From Klebsormidium nitens (Eukaryota; Plantae; Klebsormidiophyceae), in the NCBI GenBank assembly GCA_000708835.1, contig DF237245.1, forward strand, positions 52,491-110,037: DNA of 57,547 nt, written 5' to 3'. Under the pieces are notes generated by a model, which saw nothing but the letters and a program-made list of their open reading frames with translations, was not told where the DNA came from and made no database searches. This document shows positions 32,001 to 44,537 of the stretch, in pieces. Every line of letters starts with the position of its first letter. Position 1 is the stretch's first letter. Made by a program: the position numbers and the translations under genes.

Positions 32001-33560
32001 CGTATATGACCACCAGATGGCGCGTATCGCACTAATTTGCAAATCGAAGTTTTCTCATTTCGCTCAACGTAGATGGTATGTGATCCCTTAGTCTCTTTCT
32101 ATCTCCCCCTTTTGCAACAGAAAATGCCCGAAGGAGGTCCTGGCACAGGAGCAGGACACCCATGATCGGCGCGGCCGCCCAACATACTTATACCCGTCAA
32201 ATGTCGCTTATGGATCATTTGAGCGGACGAAGAGGGGAACGGCCGCGCGCTTATGCCGAGTAGGGGCTTGCGGATATTGACTTCTCCATCTGCCACCGTC
32301 GTGCCCAGGTGCATATTGTAGAGTCACGTGCCCGGCCCTTTAACTCTCTGTTTCTGATAGCTGTATATGCCGGTCAAAGGTCAACCAATTTCGTGGAGGA
32401 AAGTTTTTGTTACGTACTTTACTTTTCAGCAAGAAACAACAAGTCATGCTGGTAGGTGCTCAGTCAGTGATCCAGTATATACTCAGGTCTTTCGAATCGT
32501 TGTAACATCGACCTGTGAGACAAGGACAGTAGAAGAGCGATTTTTTCTTAAATGTGATTTTGCCGGTTGATCTACCTTCAGGGGACCTCCAGCGAACACG
32601 GAATGGTTTAAGCCATCGCTAGCGCTACTGTATCTTCATAGAATTGATAGAGCCTAGAATACCACAAAACATTCTCAATCCACAGAGGCGTCACAGTGAA
32701 TCCACGTATTGGATGGTCCGTCAGAAAGAAGGCAAATAGCAATAACAACTTCTGGCACATCTTTACTTGGTCCAACTGATCCTGGTTTCAAGATGATGTT
32801 CTTTGCTCTCGCAACGAACTATTCCCTGACAGAACACCTGCACAATCTGCTGATTTTGAGCGGCAACATGATTAGCGTAGTCGTGCGGGTTGCAAACCGG
32901 CACTTTGACTCTTATTGTGATAACTGCTTATTAGGGAGGCTTCGGTTTGGTCTTGTAGGTTTTGGATCCGGGCAAAGTATTTTCCCGTCGTTAGGGTTCG
33001 TCACGTACACGCCTTCTAGCAATCAAATGGATTGTAAACGCAGGCCACTCGGATCCTCGTTTCCAAAATGATCTTCATGAGACATGAGGAGGCCCGTTTA
33101 CGGATTCGACCTTTATTGTGCACGTTCGCACAGGAATCATGCATGGCTGCATATTGATTTGAGCAATTTCGTGTCGCTACAGGAACAACAACGTTCGATA
33201 TGAGTAACAGTCTCATGCAGCTAGCCGGCACTCTTGACCCGAGCTCAATAAACAAAACGCAGGCGTGATGAAAGTTTGTGAGGCACTTACAGCTTCATGC
33301 ATGCAGAATCTTACTGATGTGGCCCGACCTATAAATGAAGCTTTAACGTTCTACGAATGCTGTTACACAGTTACAGAAATGCCAACTCGACCTCCCCCAA
33401 GTTACCAAGTTGAAGTTCTTACAAATGTTGCGGACGTCACCCACTCATTTATTAACCATCTTTTTAACAAGTTCAAGTGCACTCTCTGTGAATGTGTGCA
33501 ATTAACTTCCTGCGAGTGCAAACGCTGTGCATACTTCTGAATGGCCGCTTAGTCCACCTC

Positions 33561-34379
33561 TTACGGCGCCGGCTTGAGGGACGCCTTGATGGGCCGTTTC
33601 TTCGCTTCCAGCACGGCCTTAGCCGCCTCTTTCTCCACTTTCGCAACCTTCTCTTTCACATTCTGCAACGTCGCAAACAGCTTTTTGGCATTGTTACTTT
33701 CGTAGGTACTTCTCGTGTTGTAGTAGTAAAGGCCGCCTCCCATGCTGGGTTGAGTCCAGAAGTGACTCTTTACTCCAGTAGCCTCTAAGTCCTTAAGGAT
33801 TTGCTGCACCTTCGCGCGGAACCGCGCCGCTTCCGGGGACGTCCAATCCGGGCCCCGGGTCACCGATAACCGTTCGATCTCGCTCATCAATGGACGCCAC
33901 AGCTCCTCTGACCCTCGCCTTACCCTTAGCTTTGCGGCGTCCCCTTTCTCGCCAGCAAAGTTTTTGAGAAGAAAATTGAGGAGCTGGCTCTTCTTGTTTT
34001 TCTCCCAACCGCGAGTTGGCGCCGGAGTTTCCCACAAGTCCGTATCCGGCAACCGGAGCAGCTCCGCAGCAAAAGTCTTTGGAAAGTCTGCACCATATTC
34101 CGCCCAGCAGAGTCTCAACCGGGCGGCATGCTTCTCTAGCATGACGCTCTGTCTCAAGTAGTCCGTCTCGCTCAGCGACTCAGCCACCTCTCGAAAGACC
34201 CATGGGATCACCACCGAGGGAGGGGCAGAACTAGTCGCGCTCGCATCGCTTCTTGTGCCATCCTGGTTAACAATAGACTTTGCCGGCAAAGGCAGGGCCT
34301 CCTTTCCTTGTTCTTCAGGAGCTTCTGTGTTGCTGATGAGAGTTCCTTTGGGGCGCAGGACAGAGCTGTTCAACCCCAT
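33561..34379 (-). CDS. Orphan paired-gene family, type A copy 1 (272 aa; stop replaces the conserved Trp, losing WEVD)
   Basis: Intronless ORF MGLNSSVL...PPSVVIPWVF...KASLKPAP. It is followed by TAA-GAG-GTG-GAC-TAA where A2 has TGG-GAG-GTG-GAT-TGA. Confidence 0.8.
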   Translation of the reverse strand: MGLNSSVLRPKGTLISNTEAPEEQGKEALPLPAKSIVNQDGTRSDASATSSAPPSVVIPWVFREVAESLSETDYLRQSVMLEKHAARLRLCWAEYGADFPKTFAAELLRLPDTDLWETPAPTRGWEKNKKSQLLNFLLKNFAGEKGDAAKLRVRRGSEELWRPLMSEIERLSVTRGPDWTSPEAARFRAKVQQILKDLEATGVKSHFWTQPSMGGGLYYYNTRSTYESNNAKKLFATLQNVKEKVAKVEKEAAKAVLEAKKRPIKASLKPAP

Positions 34380-34454
34380 TGTCTCCGACTCTAGGTCCCA
34401 GTTGGTGTGGTAGAGATGCTGAATCTGCATGTGAAGCGAGTCGTGGCCGGAGGG

Positions 34455-34610
34455 GCGCCCGGCGGCCGCGTCGCGCTCTTAAACCTGTGACGGAGGGTTT
34501 TGGAGGCGCGCGCAGCGGCCGCGGTTTGCTAATGCATTATTTCTCAAAGTTTGCGGGGCGGCCGGCCGCGATTACGCGCAGGAGCGCCCCGAACCCTCCA
34601 AACCCGTTCA
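34455..34610. promoter_or_regulatory. Shared bidirectional promoter of pair 1 with inverted telo-box-like arms
   Basis: AGGGTTT at 34494-34500, GAACCCT/AAACCCG at 34591-34606, with a GC-rich GGCCG core. The same layout occurs at 38366-38480 and 43481-43576. Confidence 0.6.
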
Positions 34611-34719
34611 CAACCAGACCTGCCATGTGACTGAATTAGTCGAAAGCCGACGCGCGTCGTTGAAGTGGTTCTGTGCTAGTGGGAAGGAACTACTGTAAGC
34701 GCCTCAACGAGAAGCGGCG

Positions 34720-35526
34720 ACGGGTCTCAGCAATTCCGTCCTATCCAGGTCACGCCGGAGGGCTGACTCTAGTGGAGACGCACTGCAGGTGGGCGCCCAC
34801 CTGCCAATTAACCAAGAAGGCGCTCCGGGAAATGCTACCGGATTGAAAGCTCAAAAGGGCGTCAATAAAGAAAACTATGAAGAGAGGCTCCGGACTGCTC
34901 CTCCCTCGGTGGTCATTCCGTGGGTTTTAGATGACGTAGCTGACTCGCTAACTGAGACGGACGCCTTAAGGAGGGGCGTCACGTGGGAGCAGCATGCAGC
35001 CCGGTTGCGGGTCTGCTGGCAAGAGTACGGGGCCGAGTTTCCAAAGGAGTTTGCTGAAGCGCTAACCCGGTTCTTGGAAACGGGTGACCAGATAGATCAG
35101 GTTGTGCTGTTTTTGCTGGACATCTTTGCTGGGGACGCGAATGAAGAGACCGTGGAACGGCACGTGACGAGAGGTTCAAAGGAGCTGTGGCCACTTGTGC
35201 TTGGAGAACTTGAAAAGAGCTGGGGGGAGGCAGACTGGACCTCCGTCCCCGCTGCTGAATCCCGTCAGAGACTGCGGCAGCTGGTTATAGATTTGAGGGG
35301 CGTGGCCGAGAAACGTTTGTATAGCATCTCGGATAAACTTCTGGATGACAACCCCTCTGCAAAAAGGAACGCTGAAAAGCTGCTGGATGCAATTCGGACG
35401 TTGTGGCTAGAGGTTGAGCGAGTAGATCGTGAGGCGAAGAAGGTCGCCATCGAGGCGACTCTCAAGCCGGCGCCTTGGGAAGTGGAGGGACCTGCGGGGT
35501 CAGATTCAGAAGCCAGAAAGGGATAG
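34720..35526 (+). CDS. Orphan paired-gene family, type B copy 1 (ATG changed to ACG; otherwise an open 268-codon frame)
   Basis: ACG-GGT-CTC-AGC-AAT-TCC-GTC-CTA ([T]GLSNSVL) at 34720 is in frame with ORF 34789-35526 and aligns with MGLTSSLL of B3. An in-frame TAA at 34696 precedes it with no ATG between. Confidence 0.75.
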   Translation, partial: TGLSNSVLSRSRRRADSSGDALQVGAHLPINQEGAPGNATGLKAQKGVNKENYEERLRTAPPSVVIPWVLDDVADSLTETDALRRGVTWEQHAARLRVCWQEYGAEFPKEFAEALTRFLETGDQIDQVVLFLLDIFAGDANEETVERHVTRGSKELWPLVLGELEKSWGEADWTSVPAAESRQRLRQLVIDLRGVAEKRLYSISDKLLDDNPSAKRNAEKLLDAIRTLWLEVERVDREAKKVAIEATLKPAPWEVEGPAGSDSEARKG

Positions 35527-37336
35527 CAAAGGCGCTTGCGCAGCACTTTGCTATGGGATGGTTGTACTTGTGAGGTGTGCTCAATGAATTTATGTAGTGG
35601 ACTAAATAGATTTACGCGCATGTGCAGCTTCGCCTTGGTAGGTTCAGTAGTGCCAAAAGAATACTATATGTGAAAGACCATTAAGCCACTTGATTCAAAG
35701 CGTGTTTCCAGACGCTTCGTTGAGTTTGCAAGCCGTTTTTGATACCACTCCCCATTTTTCTGAACGTCTGCTTTTGAGTGCTTATCAACTAGAGACAAAG
35801 AAGTCGTTCCCACCTTCAGAAATGTACACGGGCTAGGTCCGCATGCGCCAGTGTCTGAGATATGCAATCAAGCTTCAATTCGGTGACCTTCGATGGAGGA
35901 AGACGTCTCACGTCTTAGTGCACCATGCTATCTGAATGTCGATCCACGCCTTCGAAGGGGACAGTCTTGAATACCTGTAGACCTAAGACTTGCACCTTGG
36001 GTCTGAGAGATCCGATCTGTTCTCAAAACAGCTCCAACAGCCCCCGCTTCCGAACAGATTTTGGGCAGACCCCGCGCACTCAAAGATTCACACGTCTTCC
36101 ATGTAAGCCCACATCAGTCTACAGGACCTTGCATGCGAGCTTAAGCCAGTCGCTAACAAGTACTGACAGTCCAAGTCGATCAGAAACCATGTTTCGACGT
36201 GCTTCCGCTTTCTGCTTGCGTGCTGACGCTTTTTTGTACGATCAATCTGCTATCTTCTGCAAGCTTAAATCCAGCCAGATATCTCTGAAGTGATAGACTC
36301 AAGCGCATCGGGGGAAAAATCGTGTTTGCCCACTTCTTCACCAAGCTCTGCTAAAATGTCCGAGCGTGTTTTAGGAAACGGCCGGACCTGATCATTGCAA
36401 ACTTCATGGAAAAGGAAAGGCATGCTCAGACCTTTGAGAATTCTGAGATCTTCGCTGAGGAGTGCCGCTTATATTGCCAGCTTCGGATTAGTACATGATC
36501 TTATTCCAGACATTTCGTCTCGCTAACTTAGGGGAAAATTTTGAAAACACACAGATCACCGTACATTCATAGTATTCTTTTGAAATCGTGATGTGATTTC
36601 TGGTTCCAGTTCGATGCAGTCTTATTAGATTGATTTTCCATACATGCGTCATGGCGCGCCTGCCGAGCAAGGCTAAAAGCGGCAACCCTTTTGTGGAACG
36701 TACCAGATACTACCGATCTGACCGGACTCCGACAGTTTTTGACTCATTTCTGGTGAACTGGCAATGGCTCCGACGATATTCAGGATGTAATCATGATATA
36801 ATCGTTGTTCTTCCAGCACTTTGCACTGGAACGAATTACAGTATGGCCACCAGAAAGCCAGAGTAATCGGTGGCGCCCATTTTCATTTTACATGCATCTC
36901 ACGGGCCCCTCGTTGGATGAAGCGAACAGTGATCAGTCGCCAGATCGGAGCCGAAGTTTTACGTTTTAAATATCAATTGGGCGGCCGGGTCTGAAAACCT
37001 ATAGTAAGACGCGCCAGTTTCGAACTTCTGGTACTGCAAGACACCCAGTTCGGAGATCCTTCAAGATCTAATCATGAAGGCATGGGGGGCGGCCATGCAG
37101 ACGCCACCGCGCGCAGCGCGCGCGGCTGCATTTGATGTGCTACCACGCTCCTAAAAACAGAGTCACAGACGGAGTCACAGACGGTGTGGCAGACGTCACT
37201 AACTCATCCAGGTTTTGTTGCAAAAGTCTATCAGCGACCGTCGTGCACGTAACAAATCCATTGCAAGAGTGTGAAAGCAAACTTTGTGAAACAACTTTCA
37301 ATAACAACGGTATGCAGAGTTTTGTCAAACAACCGT

Positions 37337-38200
37337 TCAATCCACCTCCCACGGCGCCGGCTTGAGGGACGCCTTGATGGGCTCTTTCTTCGCTTCCATC
37401 GCCACCTTGGCCGCGTCTCTTTCCACTCCCGCAATCTTCTCTCTCACCTCTTCCAGCGTGCCCATCAGTTTTATTGCATTCTTGGTCACGTGGCCCCTCT
37501 CATATTCGTAGTACGAGTGGCAATATCCGAGACTCCAAAGGTGACAGCTTTCCCCGGCAGCCTCCAATTTAACCATCAGTTGCAGCACTTTTGCGCGGAA
37601 TTGCGCGGCCTTTGGGGACGTCCAATCCGGTCCTTTGTTCACCGATGCCCGTTTGATCTCTTCCAGAACTGGGCGCCAGAGTTCTGTTGAGCCCCGTTTG
37701 ATTCTCAAATTTGCGGTATGTTCATCCTCGGCAGCGAAGGTGTTCAGAAAGAAGGTGAGGAGCACGCTCTTTTGGTTCTCTTCCGCGATATCATCCTCTG
37801 AATCCGGTCCCGTTTCTTCAGAGGGATCCCGGCCCGTCTCCCACACATCTGTGCCCGGCAACCGGAGTAGCTCCGCAGCAAACGTCTTCGGAAATTCTGC
37901 ACCGTGTTTTTGCCAGCAAAGCCTCAAGCGGGAGGCGTGCTTCTCTAGCATGACGCTTCTTCTGAAGTAATCCATTTCGTTCAGAGACTCGGCCACCTCT
38001 TGAAAGACCCATGGAATCACCACTGAGGGACTCGGCGCAGGTTGATTCGCACTCGCACTGCTTCTCTTGCTACCCTGATTATCAGTGAACTTCTCCGACA
38101 AAGGCAGCAGAGCCTCCTTCCTGAGGTCTTCAGACGCTAAGGTGCTAGAATCATGATCAAGAGTGCCCTTTGAGGCAAGGATAGAGCAACTCAACCCCAT
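37337..38200 (-). CDS. Orphan paired-gene family, type A copy 2 (intact, 287 aa)
   Basis: Intronless ORF MGLSCSIL...PSPSVVIPWVFQEV...KASLKPAPWEVD*. Confidence 0.85.
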   Translation of the reverse strand: MGLSCSILASKGTLDHDSSTLASEDLRKEALLPLSEKFTDNQGSKRSSASANQPAPSPSVVIPWVFQEVAESLNEMDYFRRSVMLEKHASRLRLCWQKHGAEFPKTFAAELLRLPGTDVWETGRDPSEETGPDSEDDIAEENQKSVLLTFFLNTFAAEDEHTANLRIKRGSTELWRPVLEEIKRASVNKGPDWTSPKAAQFRAKVLQLMVKLEAAGESCHLWSLGYCHSYYEYERGHVTKNAIKLMGTLEEVREKIAGVERDAAKVAMEAKKEPIKASLKPAPWEVD

Positions 38201-38740
38201 CTCCTTGTTGAAAATATTTATTGTAGTTGAGACCAAGAGATGATCGGCGCACGTCCCAGCTGCTCGTGTTATTACTCTTTGTTGGTGAACAAACACAACT
38301 CTCGCTGACGCTGACCGCCGAAGGGGCGGCCGGCGTCGCGCTATTTCAGCCCGTGATGAAACGGAAGGGTTTGGGCGCAGACTCTAGACACCGGCCGCCG
38401 CGCCCGGATGCGGATATTGGGACGCACGAAGAGTTGCGGGCCGGCCGCGCATCCGCGCGCACTGGAGCGGCCCAAACCCTCCAGATGCACCGTCACGATT
38501 CAACAAAGAAATTCATTTGGTACTCGCGCGCTTCCGCAAGGCGACGCCAGGGTAGACTTGTCCTACTGTACTTGTTCACCAACTTCTTGGCACAGAACGA
38601 GTCGACGATCTACGGCGATATTGGTCTTGAACAGCTCCGTCCTGGCCATGTCATGCCTAAGGCGTGCAGAAAAAAGGAGACGACGCAGTACCGGTGGCCT
38701 CTTCCGCAGCCCACCTCGACAAATACAGCGCTCTTAATAT

Positions 38741-39635
38741 ACATGGTAGACCGCCCGGGAGGGCGGTGGGGGCTTGCCTATTCTGTGGGGCGACCGGGCG
38801 GATTTTACAAAGTACGTTTGCTGGCTATTGCGGATCAGTCCCGGTCTCCCCGGAATGTACCTAGGACGCCTACGAAAAAACCTATAGTCGAGGTGCGCCT
38901 ACCGAACTATGTGCCGCAGGCGGCTTTCCTGCCGCCTGCGGTGTGCGGCAAATATCCAGGCGCCCACCGCAGCTCCTTGCAAATATTCGTAAACTCCCAT
39001 TGGAGAAACAGAGCTATGCAGTGATTCTCTGTAAATTGTCGTGGATTTTTCCAGCGCAAGGGTCCGTACAGCCTCGTACGGTGCGTACTGTAAGCGCTGT
39101 GCAGTGCATATGATACCAGGTCACCAGGCTTCCCTCCTCCCGGGCACTTTGACGCATCTTTACCACACTTTGGGTGCAATACTGATGGAGTCCATTGCAG
39201 TTAAGGGTATCCTAATTTTCTTTTTCTGCACTTAACGACCGGGTTACGAGGCAGTGTCAGGCGCTTGGCAGAGGTACCAACTTCAACGTGGCAACGTCGC
39301 ACAAGTTCGTAGAACTCGTAATGTCACGTGGCAGCTCTACAAAAACTGGGTCAGCCTTACATGATTACGTTATTTTGCGGCGGCCCAATCGCGTCCGCGT
39401 TCGATGCGTAGCAGTAAATCACGAAGTCGCGCGGCCCAGTCTGTCCTTGGCCCCGGACCAGGTGTGGATCTTTTGGGGGATATTGCGTACGTTTTCGTAT
39501 CGAACCAGGGGCAACCTCAAAATAAGCTAGACTCCGCATCGTTATCTTCCGCAGAGCGGCGTCATACAGTGTCGCCCGAAGAGCGGCTGGTAGCAAACCA
39601 AAGGTTCGCATATTTACTTCGTAAATAGGCAAGCC
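38741..39635 (-). mobile_element. Non-autonomous Helitron2/Helentron-like element (~0.9 kb)
   Basis: An asymmetric perfect 12-bp inverted repeat: GGCTTGCCTATT at 38771-38782 and AATAGGCAAGCC at 39624-39635. The hairpin ACCGCCC-GGGA-GGGCGGT (38750-38767) lies between the inner repeat and the end. A second hairpin TATTTAC-TTC-GTAAATA overlaps the terminal repeat. AATAT occurs at both junctions, and B-family homology resumes on both sides. Confidence 0.7.
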
Positions 39636-39956
39636 AATATGCAGCTGACGAAATAATTCAAGGGGGAACGAGGGCAGTTAGGGCGTGGCCACGGACAGTG
39701 ACGTCAGCCTCCGGACGGCTCCGCCCTCTAGTATGGTCATTCCGTGGTTTTAGCATGCGTAACGGACTCGATAAGTGAGACGGACGCCTTGAGAAGAGGC
39801 GTCACGTGCACGTGGGAGCTCTTCTGGCAAGAATACAGGGCTCGCTTCCTGGAGGAGTTTGCTAGCGCGTTGACCCGAATCTTGGAAACCGGGGACCACA
39901 GGGATCAGTTTGCAGAATTCGTGCTGGATATCATCTCTGCTGGAAATGCAAACGAG

Positions 39957-40153
39957 AGTCTGGTAAGTAAAGAGTGACTTAACAGCGGGGTGACTTAAGA
40001 TAGGCACCCGGGAGACGGGTGGGGTTAGTATGGTGGTTAGGGTGGGTTCGGGTGCGGAGCGGGTAATTATTTGGGTGAGGTTTTTTGATTTGATTGGTCG
40101 GGACTCGTGAATCTTAAGTCACTCACCCGTTAAGTCACCCCGGAGTTACCAGT
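39957..40153. mobile_element. MITE-like insertion (197 bp) with ~41-bp imperfect TIRs and an 11-bp target duplication
   Basis: ATGCAAACGAG flanks both sides (39946-39956, 40154-40164). The left arm is ctggtaa-gtaaaga-gtgacttaac-agcggg-gtgacttaaga; the reverse complement of the right arm is ctggtaa-ctccggg-gtgacttaac-gggtga-gtgacttaaga. Removal restores AGNANEGTEKVHVT, colinear with B3 AGEATGETERMHVT. Confidence 0.85.
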
Positions 40154-42284
40154 ATGCAAACGAGGGGACTGAGAAAGTGCACGTGACGAGACGATCAGCG
40201 GACCTACGGCCTTTGATCGTCAAAACCTTTCAACAAAGCTCGGTTTGGAGGCAACTAGGGCCAGAATGGACCTCCGTCCCCGCGGTCGACTCCAGTGAAA
40301 GAAAGCAGCGACTGATCGCGGACATGAAGGCTGTGGCCATCAAGAAGCAGCTGTGGAGCACTAAAAAGCTTTTCTACCCTTCTCAGAACAGCTTCGCAAA
40401 CGGAAACGCTAAGAAGCTGCTAGATGCATCACGGAGGTTAGGAGAAATCATTGGGTGAGTGGATTAAGAAGCAAACAAGGTACTAAAAGTCGTTTGTTGA
40501 GACGTCCCTCAAGCGGGTGCCTTAAGTAGTGCAGGGACCGTCAAAATGGTATAGTAAGCTCACAACAAGGAAGGAGAATTTTGCGCCGTGCTATCGATCA
40601 GATGTTTCTAATTAGGTGTGCTCAAACGTTGTTAAGGACACACATATCTGATACGGACTTAGATAAAAAGCGGCCTTTTGAGTGTAGGCGCGCTGTTGAA
40701 AGCTTCGTGACCCACATTAGTCTATCAATCTGAATCTCCGAACGGGCCATTGTGATTGAACGTACTCTGGGGGTCTTTTTTCAACGAGTACGTTCAATTG
40801 TTTCTGGGTTCTTGCTTTGGAGGCAAGATCAGCCGAAGACACTTAAAATCGTGTCCGCGTCACGTCAACTGTCGACGAGAACGGGTTGGGGCTGTGCATC
40901 CGCAGATATTCGTGCGTCAGGAAGTCCGCTGGAGTCCAATGAAGTTTCGTGGAGGAAGAACTTCGAGTCACACGGGTCGGCCATGCAATTTTGAAGGGAG
41001 GTTCAAGCCGGAAGTAAGATCAGCCCCCCGTTCCGGATCCATTTGTGCTCTCGATATGAGTGTTGGCGCAGATTGAATATTAAAGCCCACTCCATGATCT
41101 GAAGTCGACTTCGGGAGGCTTGCACGTTGACAACTACAGAAGTCGTACTTGTCTACAGAAAAAACTCATAGACGTCCGCATCGGCCTTATGCTAAGCTTT
41201 CACAGAACTTGCCAAATGTATATACGTGATCTGGCTAACGTTTCATATCCGATAATACGTCGTGCATACATTACGTACGGCTCAGGATGGTCCGCGCCGC
41301 ATCGCTGCAGCCTGTTTCAAAGTCTAGCTGATGAGCACCATGCTGGACGACGGGTAAACGAGCGCCGCTCGATCTTTCACCTCCAATTGTTCTTCGCAAT
41401 CGGGTGCATAAGAGGCGTAATCAATGACACTTACTGAGAGAAGAAAGCATTCCTGCTTAGAAAGTTATCATACATTGACCGGAACCAGGAAAGCGTCGAG
41501 CAAGAGTGCCAGACGTTTTCAAGGTTTCCTTCCGGCTCCAGCGTATATCTCGCAGGCCGAACCTTTGAGGGTGGAGACCTGACGCAGAAGAAGACTTTGA
41601 TAACCTACAGTTCATCGTACATAGTGGTATGCTTCATAGCGCACCTGGCGAGTAAGGTCGAGCGGCAACCCTTGTCGTTTAGTATAGCATTCTGCACTTT
41701 GCGACAGGCCATACTCTGCCCGCCAAAAAGTCAAGGGTGTTCGGTGGCGTCAACATCCAAGTCACTAAGCAACTCAAGCGCACCGGTTGATTTGATCAGT
41801 CGCATACACGCACTTTGAGAAAGGGCAAAAATTCTCTTCCTTTCCAACTCCTTTCTGTATCGTCGGCCCCGCTGAATTTCCTGAAAGGGTCTGAATCTTC
41901 CTTTCAACAGTGCCACTATTTTCCGATCAGAATCATCATGGGCGGCCAAATTTGAAGAATGTTCTAGGGACCCGCCATTGGAATTTTTGTGGGGATAGTT
42001 GAGGGGCCTCTATTCATGGCGGCATGGGCGGCTGCCAATCGCGCCCCACGTTGTGCGCGCGGCCGCGTATGATGTTGAAGCACGCTTTTTATGATCAGCT
42101 TTACAGACGTCACAGACTTTGCAAACGTCACAGACTTTAATCCACTTATTCTTGCCTTTGGTATTAAGCAAGTTGTGATGGAGGACTCTTCATTCCCGAG
42201 TCGGGCAATCCCTGCGCACGTAGTAACTTTTCCGGGGAACGCCAACATTATCCACATTCTTGTCGAACTACAGTCACTGACTTC

Positions 42285-42567
42285 CCCCCCCAACAATTTG
42301 GCGCCTAAAAGACACCACCCATGCCCGTACCAAAGTGTTGTAATGGTATCCGCCCAACAGTCTCCAAAGTGCCACCACAAGAACACCAAATTGGACCTCA
42401 AGCATTATTGACGACTAAAAGGCACGTCTCAATCGGGCGTCAATCAGTCCCTTAGGGCATCTTTGGTGCTTTTCAACCTCTTTTCAAGTGTCAAAGTGTT
42501 GTAATGTGTGTTGCCTATGTGGAGGAAACCCTTTTGGCGCCTTTCAGGCGTCAATCTGTTGGGGGGG
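42285..42567. mobile_element. MITE-like element (283 bp) with ~32-bp imperfect TIRs starting CCCCCCCAACA and an apparent 2-bp TSD (TC)
   Basis: The left end is cccccccaacaatttggcgcctaaaagacacc. The reverse complement of the right end is cccccccaacagattgacgcctgaaaggcgcc. TC occurs at 42283-42284 and 42568-42569. Confidence 0.8.
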
Positions 42568-42588
42568 TCATTTCGTGATAAGTTAAGG

Positions 42589-43335
42589 TCAGTTCACTTC
42601 CCAAGGCGCCAGCTTGAGGGACGCCTTGATGGGCTCTTTCTTCGCTTCCAGCGCCACCTGTGCCGCTTCTTTATCCGCTGCCGCAACCTTCTCTTTCACA
42701 GCTTTCAGACTTGCGCACAGTTTCTCAGCATTCCTACTTACATAGCCGTCATCATAAACCACCAACGACCAAGGGCTGTATCTGCGGATGCCCCAAAAGC
42801 CAAAGGTCTTCCCAAAAGCCTCCAAGTCTGTAAGCAATTGCTGCACTTTCGCTCGGAGATGCGCCGCCTCCGGGGACGTCCAATCTGGGCCCTTGCTCAC
42901 CAATGCCCGTTCAAACTCCTTCAAAACCGGGCGCCAGAGCTCCGTCGACCCTCTCTTGATCCTCAGCGGCTTTGCGGTCTCTCCTTTAGTTTTCGCAGCG
43001 AAGGTGTCCAGAATAAAGCCCAAAAACTGGCGCTTTTTGTTTTTTGGTCCCACGGGTTCCGGCCCTGTTACCCACCAATCCGTAGTATCCGGCAACCGGA
43101 GTAGTTCCGCAGCAAAAGTCTTAGGAAAATCTGCACCATATTATGCCCAGCAGATTCTCAACCGGGCGGCATGCTTCTCTAGCATGACGCTCTGTCTCAA
43201 GTAGTCCGTCTCGCTCAGCGACTCAACCACCTCCTGTAAAACCCACGGAACAACCACGGAAGGAGGTGCAGGCTGGGTTGCACTAATCGCACTGCCTGTT
43301 TCCTTGGGGGTAAGGACAGAGCAACTCAAACCCAT
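42589..43335 (-). pseudogene. Orphan paired-gene family, type A copy 3 (one in-frame nonsense codon)
   Basis: MGLSCSVL...RLRICWA-TAA (43141-43143; A1 has GAA)-YGADFPKTF...KASLKLAPWEVN*. The 747 nt are all in one frame. Confidence 0.85.
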
Positions 43336-43730
43336 TGCTTACGGTTCAAATGTAGGGACATGAACTACAGTAAATGCTCTGTGCGCCTGGCTCTCTTTGG
43401 CGCTGTTCTGTTGAACAAACAGCATACGGGCGACCAGCGCGGCCGGCGTCGCATAAGTCGATGCTGAATTTATGAACACAAGGGTTTAGGTGCAAACTCT
43501 GAGTGGGCAGACGGCGGCCGCCGCGCGCCCACGTTGCGGCCCGGCTTCGCGCCCGCGCGGTCGTGGCCTAAACCCTCCACACCCGCGCAGTCAGAAGGCC
43601 GACGCGCCCTTGAACCTGGTACGTGCATGCTTAATGATGCTTGTTCACCAACTCTTTGGAACAGCACCGCTGATTTAAAATCAGTACAACAGTTGTAACA
43701 ACTTCTCAGACGGTTGTCACGGAAAGCAGC

Positions 43731-44537
43731 ATGGGACTGACCAGCTCCCTGCTGGCCAGGTCAGGCGGGAAGCATGCTTCCGGAGACGCTGTGGTTGAGT
43801 CTTCCAACCTGAACAAAGGCTCCGCTCGAGACTGCTCTACCAGAAAGAAAGCAGATGATTTGAATGAATATGGGGTGACTACAGGGAAGGGCGATGAGCC
43901 AATCCGGACAGCCCCTCCCTCGGTGGTCATTCCGTGGGTTCTGAGTGACGTGGTTGACTCGTTAAGCGAGACGGATGGTTTGAGGAGAGGCGTCACGTGG
44001 GAGCAGCATGCAGCCCGGTTGCGGGTCTGCTGGCAAGAGTACGGGGCCGAGTTTCCAAAGGAGTTTGCGGGGGCGCTAACCGGCTGCTTGGAAACAGGTG
44101 GCAATGGAGATCAGGTTGCAACTTTCCTGTTGGATATCTTTGCTGGGGAAGCAACCGGGGAGACTGAGAGAATGCACGTGACAAAAGGGACGAAGGAGCT
44201 GTGGCCCTTGGTTTTCAGGAAGTGTCGACAGAGCTTGCTTCGGAAGAGAGAGCCAGACTGGACCTCCATTCCCGCGATAGAGTCCCGTCAAAAGATCCGA
44301 CAGCTGCTTTGGAAGTTGGAATCTGTGGGCACCAGCAAGCAGCTGTGGAGCAAAAGGGTCTTCTCCTTTGAAGAGCAAAAATTTGCAAACAAGAACGCCA
44401 AGAGACTGCTGAAAGCATTGAAGAAACTGGAAAGGGGCCTTGATCGAGTAGATAGGGAAGCAAACAAGGTGATTGGGGAAGCAAAGAGAGTTGCTATCGA
44501 GGCAACCCTTAAGCCGGCGCCTTGGGAAGTGCAGTGA
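43731..44537 (+). CDS. Orphan paired-gene family, type B copy 3 (intact, 268 aa)
   Basis: Intronless ORF MGLTSSLL...RTAPPSVVIPWVL...EATLKPAPWEVQ*. Confidence 0.85.
   Translation: MGLTSSLLARSGGKHASGDAVVESSNLNKGSARDCSTRKKADDLNEYGVTTGKGDEPIRTAPPSVVIPWVLSDVVDSLSETDGLRRGVTWEQHAARLRVCWQEYGAEFPKEFAGALTGCLETGGNGDQVATFLLDIFAGEATGETERMHVTKGTKELWPLVFRKCRQSLLRKREPDWTSIPAIESRQKIRQLLWKLESVGTSKQLWSKRVFSFEEQKFANKNAKRLLKALKKLERGLDRVDREANKVIGEAKRVAIEATLKPAPWEVQ

Follow-up and report, generated by a model that had tools for sequence, protein, structure and literature searches.

Paired plant genes and a divergent gene array in Klebsormidium

Plant genes of the nucleotide-binding leucine-rich repeat (NLR) type are known to occur as head-to-head pairs, for example RGA4/RGA5 and RRS1/RPS4. 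An array whose layout resembles that of these pairs is found in Klebsormidium nitens. Klebsormidium is a filamentous, desiccation-tolerant streptophyte green alga close to land plants, from which inferences are drawn on the adaptation of plants to land. The DNA analysed, hereafter the window, is a stretch of 57,547 nucleotides (assembly GCA_000708835.1, contig DF237245.1, positions 52,491 to 110,037 of the forward strand), and all positions given below without a contig name are those of the window. Between 33561 and 44537, it carries six copies of a single gene family, which form three divergent pairs, each made of a gene of type A on the minus strand and a gene of type B on the plus strand. 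The listing of open reading frames (ORFs) and tblastn both recover these pairs where an initial annotation had located them. The best database matches of the first A gene are hypothetical proteins of K. nitens that belong to a single 110-kb scaffold. It appears somewhat probable that this locus represents a birth-and-death array formed by an undescribed family, in which an inverted-duplicate A/B pair was multiplied and is now losing its copies singly.

Like the paired NLR genes, A and B are related divergent genes with a short shared promoter, apparently duplicated as a unit and subject to quick turnover; the head-to-head arrangement on a short shared promoter is a property that they have in common. 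They differ from NLRs by the nature of their products, which have about 270 residues, are all-helical and are devoid of NB-ARC, TIR, CC and LRR. Pfam returned no match to NB-ARC, TIR, RPW8 or LRR in the five proteins of the window or in 25 family members.

Composition of the array and state of its copies

The array is composed of the following features (spacers and inserted elements are given without strand; MITE stands for miniature inverted-repeat transposable element):

33561-34379, minus strand: A1 (KFL_002960110), 272 codons, start MGLNSS, ORF open
34380-34719: spacer of pair 1, 340 bp
34720-35526, plus strand: B1, 268 codons without stop, ACG at the start position
37337-38200, minus strand: A2 (KFL_002960130), 287 codons, canonical from MGLSCSIL to APWEVD
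38201-38626: spacer of pair 2, 426 bp
38627-40546, plus strand: B2 pseudogene, N-terminal remnant and domain at 39682-40546
39957-40153: MITE inside B2, 197 bp
42274-42578: inverted-repeat element just 3' of A3, 305 bp
42589-43335, minus strand: A3 (C-terminal part annotated as KFL_002960140), 248 codons, start MGLSCSVL
43336-43730: spacer of pair 3, 395 bp
43731-44537, plus strand: B3 (KFL_002960150), 268 codons, canonical from MGLTSS to APWEVQ

Successive A starts (34379, 38200 and 43335) are 3821 and 5135 bp apart, exactly as previously reported, and the motifs said to be shared by all copies, as well as the A-specific and B-specific signatures, were all found in the alignment.

An ATG followed by an open frame is found in three copies only (A1, A2 and B3). 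Of these, A2 and B3 alone are fully canonical, and lesions are present in the four other copies (A1, B1, A3 and B2). None of the three K. nitens pairs therefore has two canonical partners, and at least one partner is damaged in each. In A1, a TAA replaces the Trp codon of the conserved C-terminal APWE, so that the last four residues are lost. In A3, one nonsense codon is present (codon 65, TAA at 43141-43143, in place of the GAA of A1), and the remaining frame is open. B1 has an ACG at 34720-34722 where all its relatives carry ATG, and its protein would read TGLSNSVL; this ACG lies in a context with a purine at -3 and a G at +4, and there is no in-frame ATG within the 268 otherwise open codons. 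B1 is either a recently inactivated copy or a copy that depends on non-AUG initiation; it is absent from the annotated K. nitens proteins returned by the database search. The lesions of A1, A3 and B1 are thus single events in otherwise open frames. By contrast with these single lesions, B2 has accumulated many. Its start region, at about 38627, is reduced to a remnant (LNSSVLAMS) that has lost the start codon, and about 0.95 kb of inserted sequence (roughly 38700-39680) in the tether-coding part keeps it far from the domain. The domain itself shows a frameshift at 39747, a deletion of 7 codons in the HAARLR helix, which is the most conserved one, the MITE, stops and a second frameshift near its end. 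B2 is long dead.

A conserved head-to-head arrangement with shared promoter blocks

In all seven cases that can be observed, i.e., those where the sequence reaches the 5' side of an A or B gene, A and B lie head to head. These cases come from three assemblies and include the three pairs of the window and the contig regions L001, L003, L009 and L002. L001 and L003 are the two ends of one 18.8-kb contig, and L002 shows an MGLICS start on the opposite strand at the edge of the contig. The conserved A/B unit proposed from the sequence of the window is borne out by these seven cases and by the promoter motifs that they share. Outside the family genes, no synteny between the contig of the second species and the window could be detected. 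Two A-type copies of the second species, one of them frameshifted, lie tail to tail (L010, 2-647 and 2255-2842); this is compatible with neighbouring inverted pairs, and arrays of this species may hold pairs in both orientations.

The spacers have lengths of 340, 426 and 395 bp in the window and of 247-443 bp in L001, L003, L009 and L002. Pairs and species have several blocks in common: a GC-rich centre, AACCCTCCAAACCC, and inverted copies of GTTTGTTCACC located about 50-95 nt before each ATG. The spacer of pair 2 carries the motif at 38284-38294 (minus strand), the GC-rich element at 38441-38451, AAACCCTCCA at 38470-38489 and an inverted copy of the motif at 38567-38583. In the same way, the spacer of pair 3 carries the motif at 43410-43420 (minus strand), the GC-rich element at 43436-43446, AACCCTCCACACCC at 43571-43584 and the motif again at 43639-43649 (plus strand). 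The spacer of pair 1 has the GC-rich centre and AACCCTCCAAACCC (34592-34605), both motifs of the GTTTGTTCACC type being missing. With at most one mismatch, GTTTGTTCACC has six matches in the window for 1.05 expected, a number reached in none of 100 shuffles, and three of these six matches sit at promoter positions. The same type of motif is also present at L001 384-394 and L002 81-91 and upstream of the genes of L004 and L005; more generally, it is found 20-95 nt ahead of the ATG in many members belonging to several subfamilies and species. It is a candidate promoter or leader element specific to the family. Since a similar motif precedes outgroup members, it is an element of the family as a whole, and the symmetric spacer resembles the outcome of an inverted duplication of a gene together with its promoter.

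This layout could be explained as follows. An inverted duplication of one family gene would have produced A and B around a short symmetric bidirectional promoter, in which inverted GTTTGTTCACC-type motifs, about 50-95 nt ahead of each ATG, would flank a GC-rich centre. The A/B pair would then have been multiplied, three times at the locus and into at least three pairs in another species, and the copies would now be lost one by one. A and B are two old paralogue types, each conserved separately.

Two old gene types under purifying selection

Using ten other family members as an outgroup, A and B form separate clades (support of 99/97 for A and 100/99 for B) that are sisters joined at 97/93; the mixing of types that would have spoken against two distinct kinds of genes was not seen. 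Both types are present in a second assembly (sample SRR23617307) and B is present in a third one (ERR11523665). Inside each clade, copies from K. nitens and from the other assemblies are intermingled, which indicates that the multiplication of A and B is old. The topology within clades is essentially a star, and for this reason congruent trees of A and B, which would directly test a duplication of the pair as a unit, cannot be obtained.

Pairwise Nei-Gojobori ratios of nonsynonymous to synonymous divergence (dN/dS) range from 0.30 to 0.51. Synonymous divergence (dS) is 0.5-0.9 for comparisons inside one type and 1.6-2.3 when A1 is compared with the B copies. These values point to a purifying but somewhat relaxed selection acting on old duplicates. 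Ratios close to 1 combined with a lack of expression had been named as what would overturn the initial proposal; the ratios found are clearly lower and A1 is covered by RNA-like contigs (see below).

Insertions in the array and length of the unit

Candidate insertions lie in the second interval between A starts. The MITE of B2 has 42-nt terminal inverted repeats (39960-40001 and 40111-40152) and is bordered by an 11-bp target duplication, ATGCAAACGAG (direct repeats 39946-39956 and 40154-40164). Its ends read GTAAGT...CAG and, according to frame arithmetic, the removal of 39963-40152 (190 nt) would rejoin both B2 frames in phase, a behaviour like that of introners. The element at 42274-42578, directly 3' of A3, has a size of 305 bp and 44-nt inverted arms that are 75% complementary, and it is a candidate third insertion and may be a second MITE. 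Within the insert of about 0.95 kb, a word of 30-31 nt (38739-38769) is common to two RNA-like contigs (2379 and 1675 nt, depth 58-75), both of which continue into unrelated sequence. This insert probably contains part of an element that is repeated and expressed.

The lengths of the candidate inserts (about 950, 197 and 305 bp) sum to about 1.45 kb, and their subtraction brings the spacing of 5135 bp down to about 3.7 kb. The corrected value of about 3.75 kb given in the initial annotation is close to this result; a proof of the correction by alignment is impossible, because the units align within coding sequence only, and the insertion-corrected length of the unit is thus approximate. Beyond coding sequence, the units show no DNA similarity to one another, and they match no other part of the window.

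These observations also bear on the proposal that the A/B unit is the cargo of a transposon or of an endogenous virus and was multiplied by transposition, not by tandem duplication. The genes are intronless, the family occupies several loci, and the MITE and other insertions lie within the array, as could be expected of such cargo. This origin is nevertheless hardly credible: the similarity stops at the ends of the coding sequences, the copies have no common terminal repeats or flanks, Pfam reveals no transposase or viral domain, the fold searches give no viral match, and the copies, whose dS of 0.5-0.9 indicates a high age, evolve under purifying selection. Membership of a known transposon, which would have undermined the initial proposal, finds no sign in terminal repeats, repeated flanks, transposase or viral domains of the unit.

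Expression and the relationship between A and B

RNA-like contigs were mapped on one 6-kb stretch that includes A1, B1 and A2. A1 is covered over 33400-34404 by contigs from four runs of two studies, without any joint or difference, at a depth of 5-27. Two short contigs of low depth were obtained for A2, and no contig from the four runs matches B1 or the intergenic DNA of this stretch. The runs are presumed to be RNA, which would fit a coverage confined to one transcript-sized block. Since A1 is collinear with these contigs, it is intronless, as had been claimed for all copies, and the intron of its public model is unsupported.

Where they overlap, the public gene models and the translations of the window are identical; the only differences are pieces that the models add or remove by splicing. 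In the model KFL_002960110 (33561-34430), 49 residues are removed as an intron, contrary to the RNA-like contigs. The model KFL_002960130 (37337-38296) has another N-terminus in place of the MGLSCSIL start, and the C-terminal end of KFL_002960150 (43731-44537) differs from the collinear reading.

The array could also be regarded as a decaying relic without present function. Lesions in four of the six copies, together with strong evidence of expression for A1 only, itself deprived of the C-terminal WE, would agree with such a decay. However, dN/dS is well below 1 in all comparisons, A2 and B3 are canonical, the lesions of A1, A3 and B1 are single events in open frames, and orthologous intact copies exist in other assemblies, which makes a mere relic highly improbable.

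The prediction of a complex between the domains of A1 and B3 gave a score of 0.38 (0.33-0.45 among runs) versus 0.00 for each of three controls, which is graded as weak support. The mark used is reached by 51 of 78 solved complexes and by 2 of 108 mismatched pairs; at 0.60 or less, where all 4 mismatches that pass are found, only 5 of the 78 solved pairs pass. At least 82% of contacts recur between runs, the predicted local distance difference test score (pLDDT) of the partner is 45 or more, and the folds of the chains are poor (pLDDT 45-52). The A+B model suggested as a check thus exceeds its controls, with a weak grade; the test cannot separate hetero-oligomers from homo-oligomers of paralogues, and the score is not counted as evidence of binding. 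A and B may nevertheless bind each other physically.

According to the initial annotation, A and B are obligate partners within each pair, forming a two-component system of the sensor/helper or toxin/antidote kind involved in immunity, cell death or self/non-self recognition. The conservation of the divergent pairing and of the shared promoter, the rapid turnover with moderately raised dN/dS and the weak pass of the complex of A1 and B3 (against a best control of 0.00) are in line with this proposal. It is however quite improbable. No K. nitens pair retains two canonical partners, A1 has RNA-like contigs and B1 has none, and the complex test is blind to homo-oligomers of paralogues and involves poorly folded chains. 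Furthermore, no signal of NB-ARC, LRR, RPW8, HeLo or MLKL appears in Pfam scans of 25 members or within the first 50 rows of four fold searches of PDB, so that the suggested analogies with NLRs and toxin-antidote loci receive no support from these searches. In addition, A and B are paralogues that share one fold, which is atypical for toxin-antidote pairs.

In other assemblies, B copies are also often damaged, for example in L003, where a frameshift separates the MGL start from the domain, and in L009, which has two; these frameshifts may be errors of contigs built from single runs.

Conversely, the head-to-head arrangement could be a frozen accident. A and B would then be independent and partly redundant paralogues, neither binding each other nor interdependent, and their adjacency would be kept only since duplications copy both genes and since the compact promoter cannot be split. 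The loss or damage of a partner in every K. nitens pair, the contrast between A1 and B1 in RNA-like contigs, the weak complex test and the existence of other subfamilies that work in head-to-tail arrays or alone are all expected under this explanation. On the other hand, both clades have stayed distinct under purifying selection in at least two species (A1 and the B copies are separated by a dS of 1.6-2.3), the seven visible cases are all head to head, and the signatures of each type are conserved. A frozen accident is therefore considered somewhat unlikely.

As for the birth-and-death array, any intact A and any intact B of the array would suffice, and a partnership need not hold within a given pair. 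Because both types persist under purifying selection and stay head to head, A and B are probably co-regulated and non-redundant.

An undescribed family of putatively membrane-tethered helical proteins

Among the members of the family whose N-terminus is complete, nearly all begin with Met-Gly-(Leu/Val/Gln)-x-x-(Ser/Cys/Ala), and a Cys is often present among residues 1-7. The starts are MGLNSSV in A1, MGLSCSI in A2, MGLSCSV in A3 and MGLTSSL in B3, and in most members with an N-terminus the MG lies about 45-62 residues ahead of the PSVVIPW motif. The PROSITE pattern PS00008 for N-myristoylation requires Gly2, a permissive residue 3 and Ser, Thr, Ala, Gly, Cys or Asn at residue 6; the starts of A1, A2, A3 and B3 all match it. 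These features suggest that the proteins of the family would be N-myristoylated, often with palmitoylation of a nearby Cys.

Dually acylated proteins tethered to membranes are known in plants, such as the CBL calcium sensors and the BSK kinases. The Klebsormidium proteins resemble them by the N-terminal Met-Gly, by Ser or Cys at positions 5-6 (PS00008 pattern) and by a nearby Cys available for palmitoylation. They differ by the domain located behind the anchor, which is unrelated, and their acylation is predicted.

In a first AlphaFold2 model, made with the full-length protein, residues 1-49 are disordered and would form a tether of about 50 residues. The domain alone, modelled from an alignment of 36 sequences, has a pLDDT of 91, a predicted template modelling (pTM) score of 0.87 and eight helices, the last one of 40 residues. 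This compact domain comprises about 215 residues, and the proteins terminate with the long last helix and a tail of conserved sequence K-x-S-L-K-x-A-P-W-E. The helical model and the MGxxx[S/C] start conserved throughout the family make the anchored helical proteins of the initial annotation plausible.

Foldseek found nothing at E <= 0.001 in PDB or viral models, and a shape search of the Atlas gave template modelling (TM) scores of 0.46 at most. The top row of an exhaustive structural aligner is the CNOT1 NOT module 4c0d_A (Z 8.6, 178 residues aligned, root-mean-square deviation (rmsd) 5.5), followed by the MA3 domain of Pdcd4, 2ion_A (Z 7.9, 126 of 129 residues aligned, rmsd 4.5). Further rows are 3rk6_B (Z 7.3) and 1n52_A (Z 7.1) and include MIF4G-type domains of Paip1, CBP80, UPF2 and eIF4G. 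With this aligner, Z values below 13 fall in the background range for helical proteins. The model can be described as HEAT/MIF4G/MA3-like stacked hairpins, a label that serves as description and not as membership. The HEAT, MIF4G and MA3 domains and the CNOT1 NOT module likewise consist of stacked helical hairpins and are protein-binding scaffolds, but they have no sequence signal in common with the family and none of the proteins that carry them is lipid-anchored. The family proteins could be peripheral membrane adaptor or scaffold proteins.

The four-helix bundles of MLKL, HeLo and RPW8, which had been proposed as possible relatives, are also all-helical, sometimes membrane-acting and often fast-evolving. 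However, they have four helices versus eight modelled in the Klebsormidium domain, they gave no Pfam match with the 25 members, and these folds are absent from the top 50 rows of the four PDB fold searches.

An exhaustive profile search over 1.84 billion representatives (E <= 0.001) delimits the family to 40 representative clusters. They include 11 named K. nitens proteins encoded at seven scaffold loci, the rest being Logan or JGI contigs. No named organism other than K. nitens was found among the 20 representatives looked up and four cluster proteins, and a word-indexed search returned only the A/B cluster itself and three further proteins. The family is so far seen only in K. nitens and in other assemblies that bear no species label; it is lineage-restricted and undescribed. 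The genes are thus not orphans, as they had been called, since their family extends beyond the locus (40 clusters, at least seven K. nitens loci). On the other hand, the statement that they contain no known domain is confirmed, Pfam giving nothing above noise in the five window proteins or in the 25 members (E <= 0.1). They are real, selected genes of one unrecognised family. A sequence profile search of PDB gave only marginal coiled-coil-like matches (Saglin, E 0.006; IpaD, E 0.05), a feature search of the ESM Atlas gave no usable match for the family, and a scan of metagenome contigs with the A/B alignment was blank. A literature search on the locus tags, on myristoylation in Klebsormidium and on head-to-head pairs yielded no relevant mention.

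The other branches of the family (for example KFL_002670090/100, KFL_002460140, KFL_001090230, KFL_003720030, KFL_004040150 and KFL_004530160) harbour the same domain (profile E 1e-38 to 1e-17). Like A and B, they have the MG start, the motifs PSVVIxW, HAxRLxxCW and RGSxELW, the APW[E/D] tail and an upstream TTTGTTCAC-type motif. They differ from A and B by a PEDVHKG motif in the tether, which is missing from both types, and by their arrangement: they do not form divergent A/B pairs and are found head to tail (three copies in L004 and five in L005) or single (L006).

Two members appear as fusions. KFL_002670090 (L004 544-8311) combines the family domain with an N-terminal part that has a weak thioredoxin match, and KFL_004040150 (P0020) combines it with about 350 unrelated N-terminal residues. 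Both may be artefacts of gene models rather than true architectures.

Elsewhere in the window, an ORF of 461 codons (352-1737) has a sub-threshold match to LRRs of the R13L1/DRL21 type (E 0.004, 17 bits for a cut-off of 27).

Significance of the A/B unit

Several points weigh against a birth-and-death array derived from an inverted-duplicate pair. Pair 1 is devoid of both promoter motifs, yet it is its A1 gene that shows the clearest RNA signal. The runs in question are guessed to be RNA and the stretch mapped excludes A3 and B3. Duplication of the pair as a unit is deduced from the arrangement, the tree being a star and the units aligning in coding sequence only. In the second species, there is no complete intact B, the copies being cut by the end of a contig or frameshifted. 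With regard to the proteins, lipidation is predicted from sequence and the fold matches (Z 7-8.6) lie within the background of helical proteins.

In a bolder development of the birth-and-death array, A and B would be the subunits of a membrane-tethered hetero-oligomer specific to Klebsormidiophyceae. The head-to-head arrangement would ensure stoichiometric co-expression, and reciprocal losses would force combinations between pairs, such as A2 with B3, giving a combinatorial and fast-evolving module of surface signalling or recognition. Such a module is rather unlikely.

In the A/B unit, an inverted duplicate pair with a symmetric bidirectional promoter has been amplified and is decaying reciprocally, and this unit offers a tractable case of such an evolution. 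As a multi-locus family of helical, probably lipid-anchored proteins that are confidently foldable, under selection and without recognisable relatives, these genes are candidates for a lineage-specific membrane biology in Klebsormidium.

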